IMG/VR virus record: IMGVR_UViG_3300046616_000314
Span: 124,001 to 188,000 of that record
Reading direction: 5' to 3' (one strand)
DNA: 64,000 bases
In this document: positions 19,275-62,389 of the stretch, piece after piece
How the letters are laid out: every line of letters begins with the position of its first letter
Position numbering within the stretch: position 1 is the first letter of the stretch
Translations under genes and position numbers: made by a program
Notes under the pieces: model-generated
What the model saw: only the letters and a program-made list of their open reading frames with translations
What the model was told of the DNA's origin: nothing
The model's database searches: none

Positions 19275-19351
19275 GCGCTCTTAGCTTAGCGGTCGAAAGC
19301 CGGGTGCTCATAACACTCTGATCACTGGTTCGAATCCAGTAGGGCGCACCA
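19275..19351 (+). tRNA. tRNA with CAU anticodon (Ile2 or elongator Met)
   Basis: Full cloverleaf GCGCTCT...CT-CAT-AA...AGGGCGC-ACCA; G1-C72 paired, so not an initiator. Confidence 0.92.
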
Positions 19352-24697: not shown

Positions 24698-24774
24698 GCG
24701 CCCTTCGTCTAACTGGACTAGGACCCTCGACTTTCAATCGGGTAATGCGGATTCGAATTCCGTAGGGCGTACCA
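24698..24774 (+). tRNA. tRNA-Glu(UUC)
   Basis: Cloverleaf with CT-TTC-AA loop and CCA end. Confidence 0.92.
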
Positions 24775-24794
24775 ACCTTTATTAGGTACATGAT

Positions 24795-24869
24795 GCGGCT
24801 ATAGCTCAGAGGTAGAGCGTCTGCTTGCCATGCAGAAGGTCGTGGGTTCGATCCCCACTAGCCGCTCCA
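24795..24869 (+). tRNA. tRNA-Gly(GCC)
   Basis: Cloverleaf with TT-GCC-AT loop, U73, CCA. Confidence 0.95.
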
Positions 24870-24893
24870 TCACCCTAATAAATGTTCCTGTGT

Positions 24894-24968
24894 GGAGCAT
24901 TCGTCTATCGGTTAGGACGCCAGAATTTCACTCTGGAAAGAGGGGTTCGATTCCCCTATGCTCTTCCA
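24894..24968 (+). tRNA. tRNA-Glu(UUC), second divergent copy
   Basis: Cloverleaf with AT-TTC-AC loop and CCA end. Confidence 0.9.
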
Positions 24969-41111: not shown

Positions 41112-42299
41112 ATGGCTGATTTTTCCGTTGAAGTGGTGCGGATCGCTGCACCCGTTACCGATCACCCGAACGCTGACCGCCTGTCGCTGATTCAAATCGG
41201 CGGCTACCTCTGCATTTCCGCCAAGCTGGACGACGGCTCGCATCGCTACGAAGAAGGCGATCTGGTCGTCTACGTTCCCGAAGCGTCGGTGGTTCCTGAG
41301 TACATCCTGAAGCCGGGCTTCTGGGATGAAGCCAAGGGCAAGGGCATCCTGGCGGGGTCGAAGGGCGACCGCGTTAAGGCGAAGCGTCTGCGCGACATTT
41401 TCTCGCAAGGCATTCTGCTGGCTGTCGAATTCGACATGGGGGCTCCGACTGTTGGCGACGATGGTTCGCTTGATCTGACTCCGCACTTCTACATCACCAA
41501 CGAAGCTGGTGAGCGACTGAAGGTGGAAGCCGGTGATAACGTCGCCGAATTCCTGGGCATCACCAAGTACGAGCCGCCGGTTCCGGCGTGCCTCGCGGGT
41601 GAAGTCTGCAACATCTTCGGCAAGACCGCCAAGTATGATTTCGAAAGCATTCAACGGGTCACTGACCTGTTCGAAATCGGCGAAGATGTCATCGCCACCG
41701 AAAAGATTCACGGCACGAACAGCCAGATCGGCTACGTTCCGGGTCTGAACCATGAAGAACTGTTCTTCGACGGCAACCTGTACATCGGTTCGAAGGGTCT
41801 TTCGGCTCAAGGTCTGGTGATGAAGAACAACGAAAAGAACAAGACGAATACCTACGTCCTGGCTCTGACGAACCTTCTGGATCAAGGCTTCGGCGACAAG
41901 ATCAAGGTGATTTCGGATCGTTTCGACGGCGCCGTTGTTCGCGTCTTCAGCGAAATCTACGGCAAGGGCATTCAAGACCTGTCGTACGGTACGGACAAGC
42001 CGACCATCGCGGCGTTCGACATTCAAATCAACGGCGAATACGTCGCCTACGATCTGATGGTTGAACTGGCGACGGAACTGGGCATCGCCGTGGTTCCGAC
42101 GCTGTACGAAGGTCCCTACGACCTTGAAGCTCTGATCGTCCATCGGGACGGCATTGACACGATTTCGCAAACCAACGTGCGCGAAGGCATCGTGATCAAG
42201 GCGCGGAACGGCGGTCGTCACGTCCACCACGGTCGTAAGATCGGTAAGTGGGTGAGCCCGGCGTATCTGGAACGCAAGAACGCCACCGAACACAACTAA
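41112..42299 (+). CDS. ATP-dependent RNA ligase, DRB0094/Rnl2-like
   Basis: N-terminal HPNADRLS domain; motif I TEKIHGTN, SEIYG.GIQ, FDI, REGIVIK. Confidence 0.9.
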   Translation: MADFSVEVVRIAAPVTDHPNADRLSLIQIGGYLCISAKLDDGSHRYEEGDLVVYVPEASVVPEYILKPGFWDEAKGKGILAGSKGDRVKAKRLRDIFSQGILLAVEFDMGAPTVGDDGSLDLTPHFYITNEAGERLKVEAGDNVAEFLGITKYEPPVPACLAGEVCNIFGKTAKYDFESIQRVTDLFEIGEDVIATEKIHGTNSQIGYVPGLNHEELFFDGNLYIGSKGLSAQGLVMKNNEKNKTNTYVLALTNLLDQGFGDKIKVISDRFDGAVVRVFSEIYGKGIQDLSYGTDKPTIAAFDIQINGEYVAYDLMVELATELGIAVVPTLYEGPYDLEALIVHRDGIDTISQTNVREGIVIKARNGGRHVHHGRKIGKWVSPAYLERKNATEHN

Positions 42300-44997: not shown

Positions 44998-45432
44998 ATG
45001 AGTTGGGATGCCAGATGGCTCTCACAAGCGGAACACTCTGCAAGTTGGAGCAAAGATCGAAGCCGACACGTCGGCGCGGTCATCGTGAGAGGCGATATTG
45101 ATATTTCGAAAGGCTGGAATGGTTTTCCACGCAAGATTAACGACGAAGTTGACGAAAGACACGAACGTCCGCTGAAATATCTTTGGACGGAACACGCCGA
45201 AAGAAACGCAATCTATAACGCTGCAAAGCATGGTTTCGCGACTGACGGTTGTAGAATTTATCAGACTTTATATCCCTGCGCACATTGCGCCCGAGCCATT
45301 ATTCAATCGGGCATAATCGAAGTCATCACAACCGAACCGGATTGGAATGACCCGACCTATGCCGAAGAATTTAAAGTAACTAAACAGATGCTCGCGGAAG
45401 CATCAGTAAGTGTAAGGTTTTTAGATTTATGA
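44998..45432 (+). CDS. dCMP deaminase
   Basis: SKD...VGAVIV, G.NG.P, HAERNAI, PCAHC zinc motifs. Confidence 0.9.
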   Translation: MSWDARWLSQAEHSASWSKDRSRHVGAVIVRGDIDISKGWNGFPRKINDEVDERHERPLKYLWTEHAERNAIYNAAKHGFATDGCRIYQTLYPCAHCARAIIQSGIIEVITTEPDWNDPTYAEEFKVTKQMLAEASVSVRFLDL

Positions 45433-47507
45433 GCAAGCTTTTCGTTGAAAAAGTAATGTTGAACCTTCTCACCACTTGGAGAGAAACGTTCTACTACGAA
45501 AATCTGGTGCGTCGGGCTATGCACCACGGCGCGGGTCTCTTTGACCTGGGTGGTGTGTCATCGGATTGGCGTGAATTCCTGACCAACAAGCGCAACGCTC
45601 ACGTCGCGATCTTGGAAGCGCGAGGCGATAGCCGCGCGTCGAGCTACGACTATCTGGTTCCGATCACTGAATACCTCGACAAGTCGGACATGCAAACCGT
45701 GTACGACATGATCACGGGTAGCAAGCCGGAACTGAAGGAAGACTTCGTTCTGGACGCCAATATTGAACTGTTGGGCGGTCTGCTTGAACTGACTCCGATG
45801 GAACGTCTGGTTCTGCAAATGTCGGCGGAAATGCAGGAATTGGAATATCCAATGTCCGATATGTTCCAACGTCTGAATCACGATGACAAGATGCTGGACC
45901 CGGCTCTTGCCTATTCGGTCCTCTTTGGTAAGGCGGAATCGGAATTCAAGAACATCAGCAAGAGCTTCCTGCTGAACAGCGGCATTCTTCAGACGAACAT
46001 CGACTACAAGTATCTTCATCAAATCAATGAAGAACTGGTAGATTCGTTCACGGATAAGAAACTGACTCTGGATACTCTGGACGCAGTTTTGTTCCCGAGC
46101 GACATGAGCGCGAATCTGGACCTGACTTGCTACTCGCACCTGTCCAAGGAAATCGAGCGCACCGAACGTGTCATCCAAGTTTCGTTGGACGAAAAGAAAA
46201 TCGGTACCAATGTCATGTTCTGGGGTATCCCCGGTACTGGCAAGACCCAACTGGCTCTGACCCTGGCGAAGACCCACGGCTGGGACTTGAAGGTCATCGG
46301 TGACATTTCGAAGAATGATGCGACCGAAAAGAGCCGTGCGCAACGCATCGCTAGCTTGAAGATCGCGATGAAGCTGTATGCGGGCAAACCCAATACGGTT
46401 CTGTTGTTCGATGAAATGGAAGACCTGTTCAAGCACGACACGAACGCCGTGTTCTCGAAAGCCTTCATCAACCGCATCGTGGAATCCACTCCGGTTCCGA
46501 TCATCTGGACGACCAACGATCTGATCTCGCTGGGTAGCGCGGTGCTTCGCCGTATGACCTACAACATCGCGTTTGAAATCCCCACGCTTTCGGCTCGCCG
46601 CAAGATTTGGGAAAAGCATAGCGCGGACTACAAGGTTGATATCGACGCCGATACGATTTCGTCTCTGGCGACGAACTACAACATCGTTCCGGCTCTGATC
46701 GAAAACGCGGTCAAAATTTCTTCGTCGGCTGGTCTGGCTCACGCCGAATTGCCTGATATCGTCACGTCGCTGGATCGACTGATGAATTATGGTGAGAAGC
46801 GTAAGTTCCATATCACCACTAAGAAAGACACTCCGTATAGCCCGAAATGGGCTAACACTGATCTCGATTTGGACGATCTGACTTCACGTCTGACCAAAGC
46901 CAAACCGAATTTCAGCCTGTGTCTCTATGGTGCGCCCGGTACGGGTAAGAGCGAATATGGTCGTTATCTGACGGATAAGATCGGTAAGCCGCTGCTGTAC
47001 AAGCGTGCCTCTGATCTGATCAGCATGTGGGTTGGTGAAACTGAGAAGAACATCGCGCGTTGTTTCGAGGAAGCCAAAGAAGAACAAATGGTTCTGCTGA
47101 TTGACGAAGGTGATACTTTCCTGCGCTCTCGCGAAAACGCGAAAAATAGCTGGGAAGTCACTCAAGTCAATGAAATGCTGTCGCAAATGGAATCCCATTC
47201 GCAACCGTTCATTCTGACCACGAACTTGATGAAGGAACTGGACCCGGCGGCTATGCGTCGCTTCACCTTCAAGATGAAGTTCAACTTCCTGCGTTCTGAC
47301 CAAGCTGTCGAACTGTTCCAAGCGTATTTCGGAGTGGAAGCCCCCAAGGCAATCCTCACGAATGAAATCTTGGCTCCGGGTGACTTCGCCAACATCAAGC
47401 GTAAGACGGATATCCTGGGCATCACCGATGCCGAAGAAATCTACAAGATGATTCTTGAAGAATGCGCTCTGAAGCCGGATTCCCCGCCGCGCAAGCTGGG
47501 CTTCTAA
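45429..47507 (+). CDS. AAA+ ATPase with two ATPase domains
   Basis: GIPGTGKT/LLFDEME and GAPGTGKS/LLIDEGD; LDPAAMRRF; C-terminal LGF. Confidence 0.9.
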   Translation: MSKLFVEKVMLNLLTTWRETFYYENLVRRAMHHGAGLFDLGGVSSDWREFLTNKRNAHVAILEARGDSRASSYDYLVPITEYLDKSDMQTVYDMITGSKPELKEDFVLDANIELLGGLLELTPMERLVLQMSAEMQELEYPMSDMFQRLNHDDKMLDPALAYSVLFGKAESEFKNISKSFLLNSGILQTNIDYKYLHQINEELVDSFTDKKLTLDTLDAVLFPSDMSANLDLTCYSHLSKEIERTERVIQVSLDEKKIGTNVMFWGIPGTGKTQLALTLAKTHGWDLKVIGDISKNDATEKSRAQRIASLKIAMKLYAGKPNTVLLFDEMEDLFKHDTNAVFSKAFINRIVESTPVPIIWTTNDLISLGSAVLRRMTYNIAFEIPTLSARRKIWEKHSADYKVDIDADTISSLATNYNIVPALIENAVKISSSAGLAHAELPDIVTSLDRLMNYGEKRKFHITTKKDTPYSPKWANTDLDLDDLTSRLTKAKPNFSLCLYGAPGTGKSEYGRYLTDKIGKPLLYKRASDLISMWVGETEKNIARCFEEAKEEQMVLLIDEGDTFLRSRENAKNSWEVTQVNEMLSQMESHSQPFILTTNLMKELDPAAMRRFTFKMKFNFLRSDQAVELFQAYFGVEAPKAILTNEILAPGDFANIKRKTDILGITDAEEIYKMILEECALKPDSPPRKLGF

Positions 47508-47575: not shown

Positions 47576-47893
47576 ATGTTGAGCACCACACTTATCACCA
47601 TCGCGGTCATCATTGTCATGATCAGCACGGCTGTTTCCATTTTTGCCTTTTTGGTATGGAATGGTGCAATCACTGATCGTGATGACGCAGGGATAATGAT
47701 TTTTGCAAGCTGCGCGGGTGGAGTTTTCTTCTTCCTGTCGATCCCTGCTATTTTTATCATTTTGATTTTCAGAGGCTTGTTCAAGCTTTTTGAAGGTTTC
47801 TTCACTGACGTTATTTGGTATAGCCAGCAACGTAAGAAAGAAATCACACAAGCAGAAGAAGCACACAAAGCTAAACTTAAGCAAAGAAAATAA
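47576..47893 (+). CDS. membrane protein
   Basis: Two transmembrane segments. Confidence 0.6.
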   Translation: MLSTTLITIAVIIVMISTAVSIFAFLVWNGAITDRDDAGIMIFASCAGGVFFFLSIPAIFIILIFRGLFKLFEGFFTDVIWYSQQRKKEITQAEEAHKAKLKQRK

Positions 47894-47894
47894 T

Positions 47895-48938
47895 ATGCTG
47901 ATCGAATCTAAGAAGTATTACGACTACGACGACGTTTTGATTCTACCGAAGAAGACTTTTCTCAAGTCACGTAATGACGTTTCTTTGACGGTACTCTATA
48001 AGACCAAGCATTCGCAACGTTCTTTAGTAGGCGTGCCGATCTTTGCGGCAAACATGGACACCACAGGTACGTTTGAAATGGCGAGAGCCCTTCAAGCGGA
48101 ATCCATGTTCACCTGTCTGCATAAGTTTTACACGGCTGAAGAGATCATCGCCCAATTCGATAGCGGATTGTCTTATAATTTTGCGTTCGTAAGCATCGGC
48201 AAGTCGGCTGCGGACATCGAAAAATTTTCAAAGATTCACGACAAATATCCTAACGCGCATCTGTGTATCGATGTTGCCAACGGCTATACCGACGACTTCC
48301 TTACCTTTGTGAAGGAAGTCCGCGCAACGTTCCCGAAGACCGTCATCATGGCGGGCAACGTTGCTACGGATGACATCATTGCCGAATACGACGCAGCGGG
48401 TGTCGATATCGTCAAGATCGGCATCGGTCCTGGGAACTTCTGTCGTACTCGCACGACGGCTGGTGTTGGTGTTCCCCAACTGTCAGCGGTTATGGACACG
48501 TCGGCTGCTGCTGATGGCTATGGCATCTTGATTTGCGCCGATGGCGGGCTGAATGAATATTGCGATTTCGCGAAGGCATTTGCTGGCGGCGCCAACTTTG
48601 TCATGGCTGGTTCGATGTTCGCTGCCCATGAAGAATCGGGTGGTGACAAAATTACCGAGAACGGCGAGACGTTCAAGATCACCTACGGAATGTCGTCTGA
48701 GACTGCCATGAACAAATATTATGGCAAGGTGGATGGCTATCGCGCATCCGAAGGTCGAACCGTAAAGGTCCCGTATAAGGGTCCGGTGGCGGACACTGTT
48801 CGAAATATCCTGGGTAGCTTGCGTAGCACGCTGACTTATACTAATATCGCCAAGCTGGATAATTTGTACATGGCGAAGATGATTGTGGTCAACAATACCA
48901 TTAATCGCAGCCACGTACGGAACACGATTGGGAACTGA
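47895..48938 (+). CDS. guaC: GMP reductase
   Basis: DYDDVLILPK..SR, AANMDTTGTFEMA, CIDVANGY, KIGIGPG..C.TR, ADGG, YRASEGRTV; no CBS domains. Confidence 0.9.
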   Translation: MLIESKKYYDYDDVLILPKKTFLKSRNDVSLTVLYKTKHSQRSLVGVPIFAANMDTTGTFEMARALQAESMFTCLHKFYTAEEIIAQFDSGLSYNFAFVSIGKSAADIEKFSKIHDKYPNAHLCIDVANGYTDDFLTFVKEVRATFPKTVIMAGNVATDDIIAEYDAAGVDIVKIGIGPGNFCRTRTTAGVGVPQLSAVMDTSAAADGYGILICADGGLNEYCDFAKAFAGGANFVMAGSMFAAHEESGGDKITENGETFKITYGMSSETAMNKYYGKVDGYRASEGRTVKVPYKGPVADTVRNILGSLRSTLTYTNIAKLDNLYMAKMIVVNNTINRSHVRNTIGN

Positions 48939-49763: not shown

Positions 49764-50013
49764 AGAACTTGATCGCTTCTTTATAGAAAGCGGCGCAAGT
49801 TTTATACACAACAAAATTTCAACCTGTATTGCAGCATGGTTCGTTCCGATCCCTCTTTGGATTGCGGCGATTGCCCTGAATAACCTATACCTATATTTTG
49901 GAAGCACGATATTTTCGGTTGCAATTTGGTGGTGGTCGATATATAATTTGATCCAAATTAATAACGATTACGTGGATAAATTAGATGTCATCTATCGCGC
50001 AAAGCAAAGATGA
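49750..50013 (+). CDS. membrane protein
   Basis: Hydrophobic segments; start MNSGKEL. Confidence 0.45.
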   Translation: MNSGKELDRFFIESGASFIHNKISTCIAAWFVPIPLWIAAIALNNLYLYFGSTIFSVAIWWWSIYNLIQINNDYVDKLDVIYRAKQR

Positions 50014-50788
50014 TCTCGGCGACCGGATGAAGGGTTACGAGAATCATGAGACAGGGCGTCGGTTTATTCCGATGTTGCCGGTCTATGGGCGTTTCGATGG
50101 CATTGGCTTCTCGAAATTCACCAAAGGGATGGCTCGCCCATTCGACCAACGCATGACGGATACCATGGTTGAAGTGACCAAGTATCTCGTCAAGGAAACC
50201 CATGCTCGTATCGGCTATGTTCAGTCCGATGAGATCAGCCTGTTTTGGCACGCGGAAGACCATCTTTCGAGCTTGCGCCACGACGGCAAGGTCATGAAGT
50301 CGGCAACTACGGTTGCTGCCAAGGCTTCAGCGAAGATGGGTCAACTGATTCGTGGTTGGGAACCCTTTGAAGATCGCCTGCCCGCCTTTGACGGGCGCGT
50401 GCTTCAGCTACCCAATCGGGGCGAAGTCGCCAATATGTTTTTGTGGCGGAATATCGATGCGACCAAAAATGCGGTGAGCATGGCGGCGCGGCATTACTAT
50501 TCCACCAAGGAACTGTTCAAGAAGAACCAGGGTGAAATGATTACGATGCTAGCGGAAAAAGGCGTCACGTTTGACGACTATCCGAAGGCATTTCGTCAAG
50601 GTACCTGGGTTCGGCGTGTGACGGAGCAACGAACGTTGACCGATGATGAGCTAGCCAAAATTCCGGCTAAGCATCGTCCCAATGCTTCGGAACTGGTCAC
50701 GCGCTCTGAAGTCAAGATTTTGGATGTCCCTCCGTTCAGAGACATTTTCAATCGGGCAGGGTTCCTTTACGGCGAGGATGCGTACTAG
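49985..50788 (+). CDS. tRNA(His) guanylyltransferase Thg1-like protein (3'-5' polymerase)
   Basis: LGDRMKGYE, RFDG.GFSKFT, GYVQSDEISL, FDGRV, WR..DA..N. Confidence 0.92.
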   Translation: MSSIAQSKDDLGDRMKGYENHETGRRFIPMLPVYGRFDGIGFSKFTKGMARPFDQRMTDTMVEVTKYLVKETHARIGYVQSDEISLFWHAEDHLSSLRHDGKVMKSATTVAAKASAKMGQLIRGWEPFEDRLPAFDGRVLQLPNRGEVANMFLWRNIDATKNAVSMAARHYYSTKELFKKNQGEMITMLAEKGVTFDDYPKAFRQGTWVRRVTEQRTLTDDELAKIPAKHRPNASELVTRSEVKILDVPPFRDIFNRAGFLYGEDAY

Positions 50789-51018
50789 TGCCGAAAACGT
50801 TGACTAACGATTTCAACTCTACCGGAGGCTTTGTGCTTTATTTGCGGTCTCTTATGCAGAGCGGCGAGACTGGGCAGGAATGTCGGGATCGCCAAGAAGC
50901 ATATATAGATAAGCATTGCACTGGGCGATGGGGAGCAAATCAAATTGGATCAGCAATGGTACTAGCGTTTGAAGACCCGGAAGACTTGGTTTTGATGCGG
51001 TTGAAATACTCGCTATGA
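50788..51018 (+). CDS. FxxEEDA-FKLKW family small protein
   Basis: HCTGRW...AFEDPEDLVLMRLKY. Confidence 0.68.
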   Translation: MPKTLTNDFNSTGGFVLYLRSLMQSGETGQECRDRQEAYIDKHCTGRWGANQIGSAMVLAFEDPEDLVLMRLKYSL

Positions 51019-51072
51019 GATAAAGAATTTTCTCGTAGCGGTTATTTTTCCCTTGATTATAGGAGAAAGAAA

Positions 51073-51270
51073 ATGCTACTAGAAAGTTCACTAATTGGTC
51101 TGCCTCTGAAGGATGCAGAAATTCGCGGCAAGAAACTGGGAATTCGTTCTATTCGTGTGTTGGAAGAAGATGGCGAACGCTATCGCTTCGCAGCCGAAGC
51201 CGAACGTCAAGATCGGATTAATGTCGGTGTGATCGAAGGTCATATCGTACGCCTGTATGGACGTGGATAA
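51073..51270 (+). CDS. peptidase inhibitor I78/I13-like small protein
   Basis: LIGL...A...RV...DG...DRINV.V..G.IV...G pattern; AGGAG RBS. Confidence 0.55.
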   Translation: MLLESSLIGLPLKDAEIRGKKLGIRSIRVLEEDGERYRFAAEAERQDRINVGVIEGHIVRLYGRG

Positions 51271-51861
51271 ATGAAAGTTTCGCTTCGCAAAGCTGCCGCT
51301 CTGTCGCAACTCCTGTTCGACGCCAGCAAGAAATTTCCGCTGACGAAAACCATTTCGTTTTCGATCTATGCGGACGTTTCCGTTGGTAAGGAAATGATTG
51401 AGGCGCGCGAAGCTTTCGAGGCGAACCTTACGGCGGCTGGTGATCTAGTCGCTGGTGCCTACGTCATTCGTGCTCTGCTGGGCGACGCGAACAACAAGTT
51501 TGGCGTTGACGCTCGCCTTGCGGAACAAGCCGGTCTGAGTGCCCGCGAAAAGCTGCTGACGGCGGCTATCGCGGGCAATGATGCCTATGGTGCCGTGGCG
51601 TACAAGGAACCGAATACGGTCGGAGCCCAACTGTCGGCTATGATCGAGCGTTCCAAGTCGTCTGAACGTATCCGTTCGGATGACAGCCTGACCGTGAACG
51701 TGTTGGACGCTGGTTTCATCACGGAAATTCAAAATCAACTCGCGGACATTCGTCGCCGTAAGGTGGCGATCTCCGACGATCTGCTGGGTATCAATACCGG
51801 GCAGACTGTCGAGTTGCCGGAATCGGTCGTCAAGCTGCTGCAAAGCATCAAGGCGATCTAA
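51271..51861 (+). CDS. helical hypothetical protein (possibly remote DIP1984-like)
   Basis: MKVSLRKAAAL... and C-terminal D.LL.IN...VEL. Confidence 0.7.
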   Translation: MKVSLRKAAALSQLLFDASKKFPLTKTISFSIYADVSVGKEMIEAREAFEANLTAAGDLVAGAYVIRALLGDANNKFGVDARLAEQAGLSAREKLLTAAIAGNDAYGAVAYKEPNTVGAQLSAMIERSKSSERIRSDDSLTVNVLDAGFITEIQNQLADIRRRKVAISDDLLGINTGQTVELPESVVKLLQSIKAI

Positions 51862-51865
51862 GAGC

Positions 51866-52128
51866 TTGTGGAACGTCGGTCCTCGGATCGATGACCACGA
51901 GGGGTGAAGATGGAGTTGAGCTAGGTACACAAACAAAGTCATGGTTTCCTTCCAGGGAAACTCGCACCCGAAAGGGACGAAACCTTGCTAATCCGGTATT
52001 TTAGCTTTCGAGCCGCCTCTTTAGGGGTGTTTGTTTTTTGCTCGGATTTGTTGGTTTCTTTGTGCGTTGCTACTTGTTCGTTGCAACTTGTTCGTTGCTC
52101 GTACCCTTGATCGCTCCGTCTTCACTCT
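51866..52128 (+). ncRNA. putative structured non-coding RNA or 3'UTR element
   Basis: 15-bp closing stem 51901-51915/52114-52128, several internal hairpins, U-rich repeated tract. Confidence 0.6.
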
Positions 52129-52250
52129 ACCAATTCAAAAAAGGAACTGACTGTTATGATTGCCTAATTCGTCAAGAGATCGCTTCGCCCATCATAGTCA
52201 CGCGCTTGCGCGGGATGATGGCTGTCTATGACTAATTATAGGAAATCAAA

Positions 52251-52502
52251 ATGTCAGAAATTAAAAAGCCCAAGGGCTATCGTACACTGAATATCGGTCT
52301 GGAAACTTGGTACTGGACCAGAGGAAAAAAGAGCACGGTGATCATAAGCCCTCTCGGAAAGCGTTCTCACGTAAGTAACGACGTGATTGCCGATATCTTA
52401 GAAACGACTTGTGAGTGCTGCGGTGAGTCCGATGGGGGCGAAATCCCAGTGGTCTTGCCGAGTGGCGTTCGAAAATATATCGACGCTAATTTGAGAACTT
52501 GA
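52251..52502 (+). CDS. hypothetical protein
   Basis: AGGA RBS; CECC motif. Confidence 0.6.
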   Translation: MSEIKKPKGYRTLNIGLETWYWTRGKKSTVIISPLGKRSHVSNDVIADILETTCECCGESDGGEIPVVLPSGVRKYIDANLRT

Positions 52503-52553
52503 TAAATTTGCGCCAGCCTGAGAAATTGGGCTGGCGCAATAGCATGGTGGAAT

Positions 52554-52715
52554 ATGGGCTTCGAAGTCTGGGTAAAACTGACGAACTACGAACGTCAAGT
52601 CTATTGGGCTTTCGGCTTGCCGGAAGCTAAGAGCTATGCCTTAATGTGCAGAGAAATGCACGGGACGACCTTCACTGTTGAAGTGCGTGCCAACGGAACT
52701 ATTTTAGATGCCTAA
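52554..52715 (+). CDS. small hypothetical protein (53 aa, not in ORF track)
   Basis: MGFEVWVKLTNYERQ...TILDA after hairpin 52508-52539. Confidence 0.45.
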   Translation: MGFEVWVKLTNYERQVYWAFGLPEAKSYALMCREMHGTTFTVEVRANGTILDA

Positions 52716-62314: not shown

Positions 62315-62389
62315 TGGCGGCGATCAGAGGACTCGAACTTCTATACACCCTTTGCGAGGGCACCCGTATCCAATTCCGGGCAGATCGCC
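62315..62389 (-). tRNA. atypical tRNA-Cys(GCA)-like gene
   Basis: GGCGATC/GATCGCC acceptor stem, TTCGAGT T-loop, TC-GCA-AA loop, encoded CCA; G73, C33 and a T-stem mismatch are non-canonical. Confidence 0.6.

Follow-up and report, generated by a model that had tools for sequence, protein, structure and literature searches.

Short RNA motifs repeated at fixed intervals and read by oligomeric proteins are exemplified by the trp leader bound by TRAP (GAG/UAG repeats) and the leader bound by HutP (UAG repeats 7 nt apart), in which the arrays are cis-regulatory and single-stranded and are read by host ring proteins. Sponge RNAs of the CsrB/RsmZ type likewise carry many copies of one short motif in a stable non-coding RNA suited to titrating a protein, but there the motif is GGA, displayed in hairpin loops at irregular spacing. 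In type III toxin-antitoxin systems a tandem-repeat RNA (ToxI and similar) is encoded beside its protein partner, with repeats of about 36 nt that lie upstream of the toxin gene and are cut into units. Phages additionally carry large ornate RNAs of about 600-800 nt, such as GOLLD (RF02032) and ROOL, which are highly structured, of unknown function and located next to tRNA genes, and for which no dedicated protein neighbour has been reported; the stable RNAs species 1 and 2 of T4 also sit among phage tRNA and RNA-repair genes. Finally, the Y RNAs of Ro ribonucleoproteins and tmRNA have paired 5' and 3' ends, a pyrimidine-rich internal region and phage-encoded examples. Giant phages carry many unexplained genes, but few of their non-coding RNAs are known.

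The locus considered here lies in a window of 64,000 nucleotides, bases 124001-188000 of the IMG/VR record IMGVR_UViG_3300046616_000314, a 561-kb, 97%-complete virus record, that is, a giant phage. In a stretch of this window without a credible gene, an RNA of about 230 nt, of a family not described before, follows the gene of a 196-aa protein predicted to be all-helical (Table 1). The RNA carries six U-Y-G triplets at a period of 7 in a tract predicted to be single-stranded, recalling the TRAP and HutP targets, but here the array sits inside a closed, multi-helix RNA in a phage, next to a helical protein with no similarity to TRAP or HutP. In contrast to the Csr motifs, the motif is U-Y-G in a linker at a strict 7-nt spacing, and no Rfam Csr/Rsm model matches. 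In contrast to ToxI, the repeats are 7 nt long, lie inside a folded RNA and follow the gene, and the protein has no ToxN-like fold. The nearby genes are related to RNA and nucleotide metabolism and include, besides those in Table 1, a dCMP deaminase, an AAA ATPase and an IMPDH/GMP-reductase-like protein.

Table 1. Features of the locus and its surroundings, in window coordinates
Position	Strand	Feature	Remarks
41112-42299		RNA ligase gene	
49985-50788		Thg1-like tRNA-His guanylyltransferase gene	
51271-51861	+	196-aa protein gene, conserved neighbour of the RNA	Family phrog_25230; no Pfam family
51862-52250		Stretch without a credible gene	
51866-51900	+	GC-rich spacer hairpin between the stop codon and the RNA	Inferred role: 3' protection of the mRNA, or a processing signal
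51901-52132	+	Structured RNA as matched end to end by both covariance models	R1 252 bits, R2 180.7 bits; once in the 561-kb genome; inferred extent
51901-51915	+	P1, 5' arm of the 15-bp closing stem	Pairs with 52114-52128; model covers 51901-51913 with 52116-52128
51924-51928	+	GGTAC, possible stalk extension	Would pair with GTACC, 52101-52105
51943-51962	+	P3, variable hairpin	At this position in most homologues; sequence and length vary
51965-51977	+	P4, CACCC-loop-GGGA hairpin (CCC-GAAA-GGG at 51967-51976)	Stem nearly invariant; loop GAAA, UUAU, GUAA and others
51979-51995	+	5' strands of P5a (51979-51984) and P5b (51990-51995)	Internal loop UUGCUA between them
52014-52039	+	P6 hairpin (CGCCTC/GGGGTG, 52014-52029) and U-rich run	Hairpin plus YUGUUYNUUUG kept in all members; looks like a terminator but lies inside the RNA
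52038-52235		65-aa mechanical ORF	Overlaps the repeat tract; not conserved
52043-52058	+	3' strands of P5b (52043-52048) and P5a (52053-52058)	Internal loop UUGUU between them
52058-52099	+	Six heptads, N-N-U-Y-G-Y-N, A-poor, predicted single-stranded	G at 52062, 52069, 52076, 52083, 52090 and 52097
52065-52098	+	14-nt tandem repeat	
52114-52128	+	P1, 3' arm	
52129-52132	+	ACCA directly after P1	Among the 13 aligned sequences, only in the window and CcrColossus; others ACCU, ACUU, AUCU, UACU or U-runs
51938-52120; 51931-52110; 51967-52124		Single contigs from three RNA libraries	
52251-52502	+	83-aa ORF	

An earlier note, made from the sequence alone, had described this gap as a structured RNA with a U-rich repeated tract, and its observation is confirmed, as every element that it listed is present in the sequence. 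The three non-Watson-Crick pairs of the 15-bp stem are all G-U, and the stem appears in both the MFE and the centroid structures of the + strand, which folds to -130 kcal/mol (z -3.5, with 0 of 100 shuffles as good), whereas the minus strand folds less well (z -2.1). Some details, however, need correction. The note had included the first hairpin in the RNA, but the RNA proper starts only after it: all 13 loci compared have one or two GC-rich hairpins in a spacer of 39-80 nt, with no U-run and no shared sequence. The note's GCTAA/TTAGC hairpin is not conserved and competes with the covarying helix P5b. Its GGTAC/GTACC continuation of the stem is present in the MFE fold and can be extended into an irregular stalk in every homologue, but by duplex energy this is no better than shuffled sequence, and it is therefore possible rather than shown. 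The basic period of the repeat is 7 nt and not 14, the 14-nt super-period being seen only in the window and the Bambus group.

The RNA does not belong to any family for which a model could be matched. Against Rfam 15 at gathering thresholds the window gives only four tRNAs, all elsewhere; the region 51700-52350 searched at E<=10 gives one chance snoRNA hit at E 1.3; and nine homologous loci searched at E<=1 give nothing on the RNA. No paper describing this RNA was found in the literature. Comparison of the region with 50,697 phage records at the DNA level gave no match, and a search with the CcrColossus RNA finds only CcrColossus and CcrPW, indicating that the members are too diverged for blastn. 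Scans with exact motifs were equally unproductive: one found nothing, another gave one chance hit inside a 363-aa ORF, and a scan of metagenomes gave 12 hits, all chance matches in coding-looking DNA with no U-rich tract.

Relatives could instead be reached through the protein. A word-based search found one homologue (44% identity) on a 1.75-kb contig, L002, whose gene is followed by a 312-nt gap that aligns with that of the window and in which the same long stem is kept through four double changes. A covariance model built from these two sequences (R1), and later one from 13 sequences (R2), found the RNA on the + strand 39-80 nt after the protein gene in 17 of 17 loci with enough downstream DNA. 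These are the window, L002, the metagenomic contigs L018 (L018/L019), L020, L022, L023 and L024, the more distant family members L032, L033 and L034, the 415-kb IMG/VR contig L391, and the cultured Dolichocephalovirinae phages CcrColossus and CcrPW of Caulobacter and Bambus, Kabachok, Domovoi and Gurke of Brevundimonas; a further contig, L021, is cut off. In the GenBank records of the cultured phages nothing is annotated at the site. A search of IMG/VR for related loci with the single protein found none, whereas one with an eight-row alignment led to L391, and an nhmmer screen of the loci collected found no new member, although nhmmer also missed the distant members L032-L034.

What is inherited as a unit is the protein gene plus the RNA. 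Whole-genome searches give exactly one of each, side by side, in the window's genome, CcrColossus, Bambus and Gurke, while a 98%-complete 437-kb phage that shares the Thg1-like gene has neither. Small proteins follow the RNA everywhere, but they are homologous only within subclades, and a conserved third gene downstream could thus be rejected. The protein family is large, with 957 cluster representatives at 50% identity found by a profile search at E<=1e-3, but the pairing is a property of a subfamily and not of the whole family, as relatives at 24-30% identity show. Two of these (L392, L402) are followed by a 229-237-nt stretch of the same build, with a terminal closing stem and GAUUGYN or UUUUGUC heptads, as judged by eye and by MFE fold only; one (L397) is followed directly by three tRNAs; two (L394, L404) have no gap; and three (L396, L399, L400) are followed by another conserved non-coding stretch inside tRNA arrays.

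The structure is supported by covariation on a plain MAFFT alignment of 13 sequences (A6) that was not fitted to any structure. Under a 29-pair model 95.7% of cells are paired, against 80.9 +/- 1.2% in shuffles (0 of 500 reach the observed value); 20 of the 29 pairs change on both sides; and sliding the 3' partners by one to three columns lowers pairing to 43-62% (at most 61.5%). P1 is far beyond chance, being 99.4% paired with 9 of 13 pairs changed on both sides and a first pair that is G·U in all 13 sequences, and the two further helices P5a and P5b also covary strongly (96.0% and 89.5% paired, with 5 of 8 and 5 of 6 pairs changed on both sides). As G-U is accepted and A-C almost never occurs, the constraint acts on the + strand RNA and not on DNA. 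Two other helices were dropped: an alternative from RNAalifold on the two-sequence alignment (GUAC/GUGC), which breaks in L018, L023 and L024, and a small hairpin inside the heptad tract (A6 columns 187-190 / 199-202), which shows almost no double changes and has 2-3 broken cells at three of its four pairs.

Within the A-poor tract (A fraction 0.05-0.14) heptads 2-6 align without a single gap in the 13 sequences, with an invariant G every 7 columns, U at position 3 in 86% of cases and A virtually absent at positions 3-5. A 6-of-6 run of G at period 7 is found in 11 of 16 sequences, and no other period from 5 to 9 reaches 6 in the A-poor 3' region of any sequence; the tests on single sequences are only modest, with 48 to 262 of 5000 shuffles reaching 6 of 6, and the strength lies in the alignment. 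The same U-Y-G triplet recurs in other single-stranded segments, namely both sides of the P5 internal loop and the U-run after P6, giving about ten such sites per molecule. In L002 and L018 the triplet is UCG at 5-6 tail sites and at three of these other sites, whereas almost all other members have UUG, and Gurke and the Bambus group use CUG or GUG. Eight or nine parallel changes in one lineage are hard to explain unless all sites are read by the same partner, though this concerted change rests on one lineage of two sequences.

It might be asked whether the tract codes for a small hydrophobic protein, since the 65-aa ORF exists and its U-rich codons give it a hydrophobic N-terminus, or whether it acts as DNA, since the 14-nt direct repeats resemble the iterons of an origin. 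The data largely exclude both, and we regard them as very improbable: ORFs over the element differ in frame, start and length, L023 has none of 30 aa or more, the repeat period is 7, indels are not multiples of three, the pairing constraint acts on one RNA strand, and the element is present in RNA libraries.

The stretch is found whole in one DNA run, probably the source sample, and in part in several RNA libraries. When these were compared with window positions 51000-52600, two rhizosphere metatranscriptomes of about 15 million letters each, from one study, and a soil RNA-seq run from another study each gave a single contig of 158-183 nt lying wholly inside the RNA and none on either flanking gene. 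All three carry the same single difference, G>T at 52066, a variable heptad position. This is what a small, abundant, stable RNA would produce, although contigs show neither strand nor ends, these three do not cover 51901-51930 with the 5' arm of P1, and RNA libraries can contain DNA. The pattern bears on the possibility that the element acts only in cis, as a 3' UTR stabiliser, a terminator or attenuator region, or an RNase III processing stalk. In favour of this, P6 with its U-run resembles a terminator, several members have a U-run after P1, and the RNA is probably co-transcribed with the protein gene, as the hairpin-filled spacer leaves no room for a promoter. However, the contigs read through the terminator-like site to 52110-52124, though contigs cannot show transcript ends, and they cover the element but not the genes on either side; the conserved multi-helix core and heptad array go far beyond what a terminator needs; and the downstream gene is not conserved. 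A purely cis-acting role is thus considered improbable.

The genomic setting raises the alternative of a self-assembling or otherwise protein-independent ornate RNA, functionally akin to GOLLD and ROOL or to the T4 species 1 and 2 RNAs. A Thg1-like gene lies 0.5-1.2 kb upstream in the window, L018 and L020; aaRS genes occur in L020; CcrColossus has a CCA-adding enzyme 7 kb and a Thg1 gene 15 kb downstream of the RNA; the window's genome also encodes a CCA-adding/poly(A)-polymerase family protein; and of the distant protein relatives inside tRNA arrays, one lies 960 nt upstream of a full GOLLD (238 bits). The module therefore belongs to the tRNA and RNA-repair neighbourhoods of these phages. 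On the other hand, no member has an Rfam match, the RNA is much smaller than GOLLD or ROOL, GOLLD is 55 kb away in another contig, and the window's own genome carries a separate GOLLD-like match (251967-252447 of the genome, 98 bits, below the gathering score of 150), so that this RNA does not replace GOLLD. These observations point to a shared neighbourhood rather than the same RNA, and this alternative appears unlikely.

A tRNA-like or tmRNA-like molecule, whose paired 5'-GGGG and 3'-ACCA ends would be processed by RNase P, completed by the CCA-adding enzyme or by Thg1 and possibly aminoacylated, is suggested by the 5' GGGG, a G3·U pair and the 3' ACCA in the window and CcrColossus, by the invariant G1·U pair and by the Thg1-like and CCA-adding enzymes that these phages encode. 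Yet ARAGORN finds no tRNA or tmRNA at this place in the window or in five homologous loci, the paper on the Brevundimonas phages reports that ARAGORN found no tmRNA (PMC10070969), and no Rfam tRNA or tmRNA model matches. There is no T-arm, no T-loop is visible in the alignment, and there is no tag reading frame, as no ORF is conserved and the A-poor tract has no stop codons. The 5' GGGG and 3' ACCA occur in only 2 of 13 aligned sequences and G3·U in only some, and this reading is likewise improbable. A Y RNA is not supported either, as no Rfam Y RNA model matches and no TROVE protein (PF05731) was found in the 561-kb genome, although the controls responded. Nor is a retron or DRT template RNA supported, as a reverse transcriptase (PF00078) is absent from the whole genome and none occurs among the neighbouring genes.

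The protein itself has no recognised family or fold. The window copy gives no Pfam or PHROG hit, and 40 of 62 family members match phrog_25230, of unknown function. With a 62-row alignment AlphaFold (AF2) gives a confident all-helical model (pLDDT 95), for which Foldseek and VIA-align find only generic helical hairpins and BAR-like rows at insignificant scores, with no PDB match beyond these; the ESM Atlas returns viral hypothetical clusters (TM 0.82-0.86) and a weaker likeness to a cluster partly annotated DUF6847. The protein is near-neutral (pI 5.8-7.8) and has no recognisable RNA-binding fold, but the family has a conserved RRRK patch. A homodimer is predicted, with a score of 0.66 against 0.00 for the best of three controls, a mark reached by 20 of 30 proteins solved as pairs of one chain and 1 of 23 solved as single chains; contacts agree at 98% or more between runs and partner pLDDT is at least 88, though this is the model's own confidence and not a measurement.

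Taken together, the analysis establishes the RNA structure, its conservation and linkage to the protein gene, its presence in RNA libraries, the heptad periodicity and the concerted motif change, whereas co-transcription and processing from the protein's transcript, binding of the tract by a protein, the identity of that protein and the biological role are inferences. The proposal favoured here, at a rough probability of 0.45, is that the RNA is the nucleic-acid half of a phage ribonucleoprotein. In this view the closing stem of 14-15 bp holds together the hairpins P3 and P4, the interrupted helix P5a/P5b enclosing P6, and a 42-nt single-stranded linker, and the heptad array, together with three or four further U-Y-G sites in loops, would bind several copies of one RNA-binding protein, most likely the co-encoded one as three dimers, with the RNA either scaffolding that protein or holding it in reserve during infection. 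The odds are kept below even because the contact is inferred and the protein does not look like a classical RNA binder. The earlier note's interpretation, a non-coding RNA partner of the upstream protein or a protein sponge or decoy, is thus supported in part: the non-coding nature and the co-inheritance hold, while the contact and any sponging stay at the level of inference.

The chief alternative is that the RNA is a decoy for a host factor, such as a single-strand RNA-binding protein or an endoribonuclease recognising U-Y-G in U-rich RNA, the upstream protein being linked only by gene order. This would agree with the number of U-Y-G sites, the avoidance of A, an apparent abundance sufficient for assembly from RNA libraries of about 15 million letters, and the non-basic protein without an RNA-binding fold. 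Against it stand the strict gene pairing over proteins down to about 33% identity, the joint presence or absence in whole genomes, and the difference in motif between phages of closely related hosts, UUG in the Caulobacter phages and GUG or CUG in the Brevundimonas phages, which fits a fast-evolving phage partner better than a conserved host one. It is accordingly held to be unlikely, though less so than the other alternatives.

No known family fits this RNA, and the nearest kinds are the stable structured RNAs of phages and the repeat-motif RNAs that bind proteins; it has a fixed protein neighbour and a very unusual feature, six gap-free heptads that change in concert. It is also open to direct experimental study, being present without annotation in cultured phages of Brevundimonas and of the model bacterium Caulobacter crescentus (CcrColossus record 201344-201567, where the protein is gp272, and CcrPW). 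A further reading, tentative and less likely than not but with a substantial chance of being right, is that of a previously unknown class of phage ribonucleoprotein spread over hundreds of giant-phage lineages, wherein a dedicated helical protein would read a six-fold heptad 'ruler' displayed by a closed, structured RNA, motif and protein would co-evolve (UUG, UCG and CUG/GUG types), and the particle would act on host or phage RNA metabolism in the tRNA and RNA-repair module of these genomes. If the heptad array is a multi-site protein dock, it would be a compact new model for periodic RNA recognition, and it could also point to a new layer of phage control over host RNA metabolism.

Upstream of the finding lies an RNA-repair and nucleotide-metabolism block, formed by an RNA ligase with an OB-fold domain, a dCMP/cytidine deaminase, a double AAA ATPase and an IMPDH/GMP-reductase-like protein. 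The Thg1-like tRNA-His guanylyltransferase (PF04446, phrog_4717) also lies 0.4-1.2 kb upstream of the protein-RNA module in the metagenomic contigs L018 and L020, but 15 kb downstream of it in CcrColossus; a functional link to the invariant G1·U end of the RNA is, on present evidence, no more than a possibility. The window further codes for five phage tRNAs (Met, Glu, Gly, Glu, Cys), of which the second tRNA-Glu and the tRNA-Cys were found by ARAGORN, whereas Rfam lists four tRNAs at the gathering threshold.

Coordinates of neighboring and related features (window positions unless another record is named)
Feature	Position	Strand
tRNA-Met, -Glu, -Gly, -Glu, -Cys	19275-19351, 24698-24968 (+), 62315-62389 (-)	
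RNA ligase with OB-fold domain	41112-42299	+
dCMP/cytidine deaminase	44998-45432	+
Double AAA ATPase	45429-47507	+
IMPDH/GMP-reductase-like protein	47790-48938	+
Thg1-like tRNA-His guanylyltransferase	49985-50788	+
G>T difference in RNA-library contigs	52066	
Wastewater-run contig	52128-52297	
Spacer between the RNA and the next gene	52133-52250	+
Further long hairpin in this spacer	about 52158-52248	+
Gene for the 83-aa protein	52251-52502	+
GOLLD-like RNA match, same phage genome (outside the window)	G000:C1:251967-252447	+
Large gene-free gaps in the area of this match	G000:C1:251682-252056, 253201-253806	
GOLLD RNA in L399 (contig IMGVR_UViG_3300033067_000084)	1971-2427	

The same phage genome carries a GOLLD-like RNA match outside the window (RF02032, 98 bits, E 3.6e-27, below the gathering score of 150), in an area where a crude ORF map showed several large gene-free gaps. 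In the contig L399, a full GOLLD RNA (238 bits) with an embedded tRNA lies 960 nt after a distant relative (24% identity) of the 196-aa protein. L399 and two further contigs, L396 and L400, also share another conserved non-coding stretch directly after that gene, amid tRNA arrays, which has no Rfam match.

On the 3' side of the RNA, the spacer of about 120 nt that separates it from the next gene folds into a further long hairpin with no U-run. This hairpin is absent from L002, a contig bearing a homolog of the upstream protein, and so is not part of the conserved RNA; it may be a leader of the 83-aa gene. A small protein of 60-85 aa follows the RNA in all the loci inspected; these proteins are homologous within two subclades, namely a GY...VYW type and a CcrColossus gp273 type, but neither between them nor with the window's copy, which has a CECC motif. 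A contig from a wastewater run, labeled RNA-seq but probably DNA, starts exactly at the last base of P1, the closing stem of the RNA, and covers the downstream spacer and the start of the next gene. All three RNA-library contigs, which come from two studies, share a single-base difference from the window. Thus, a slightly different strain of this phage seems to be widespread in soil and rhizosphere samples.
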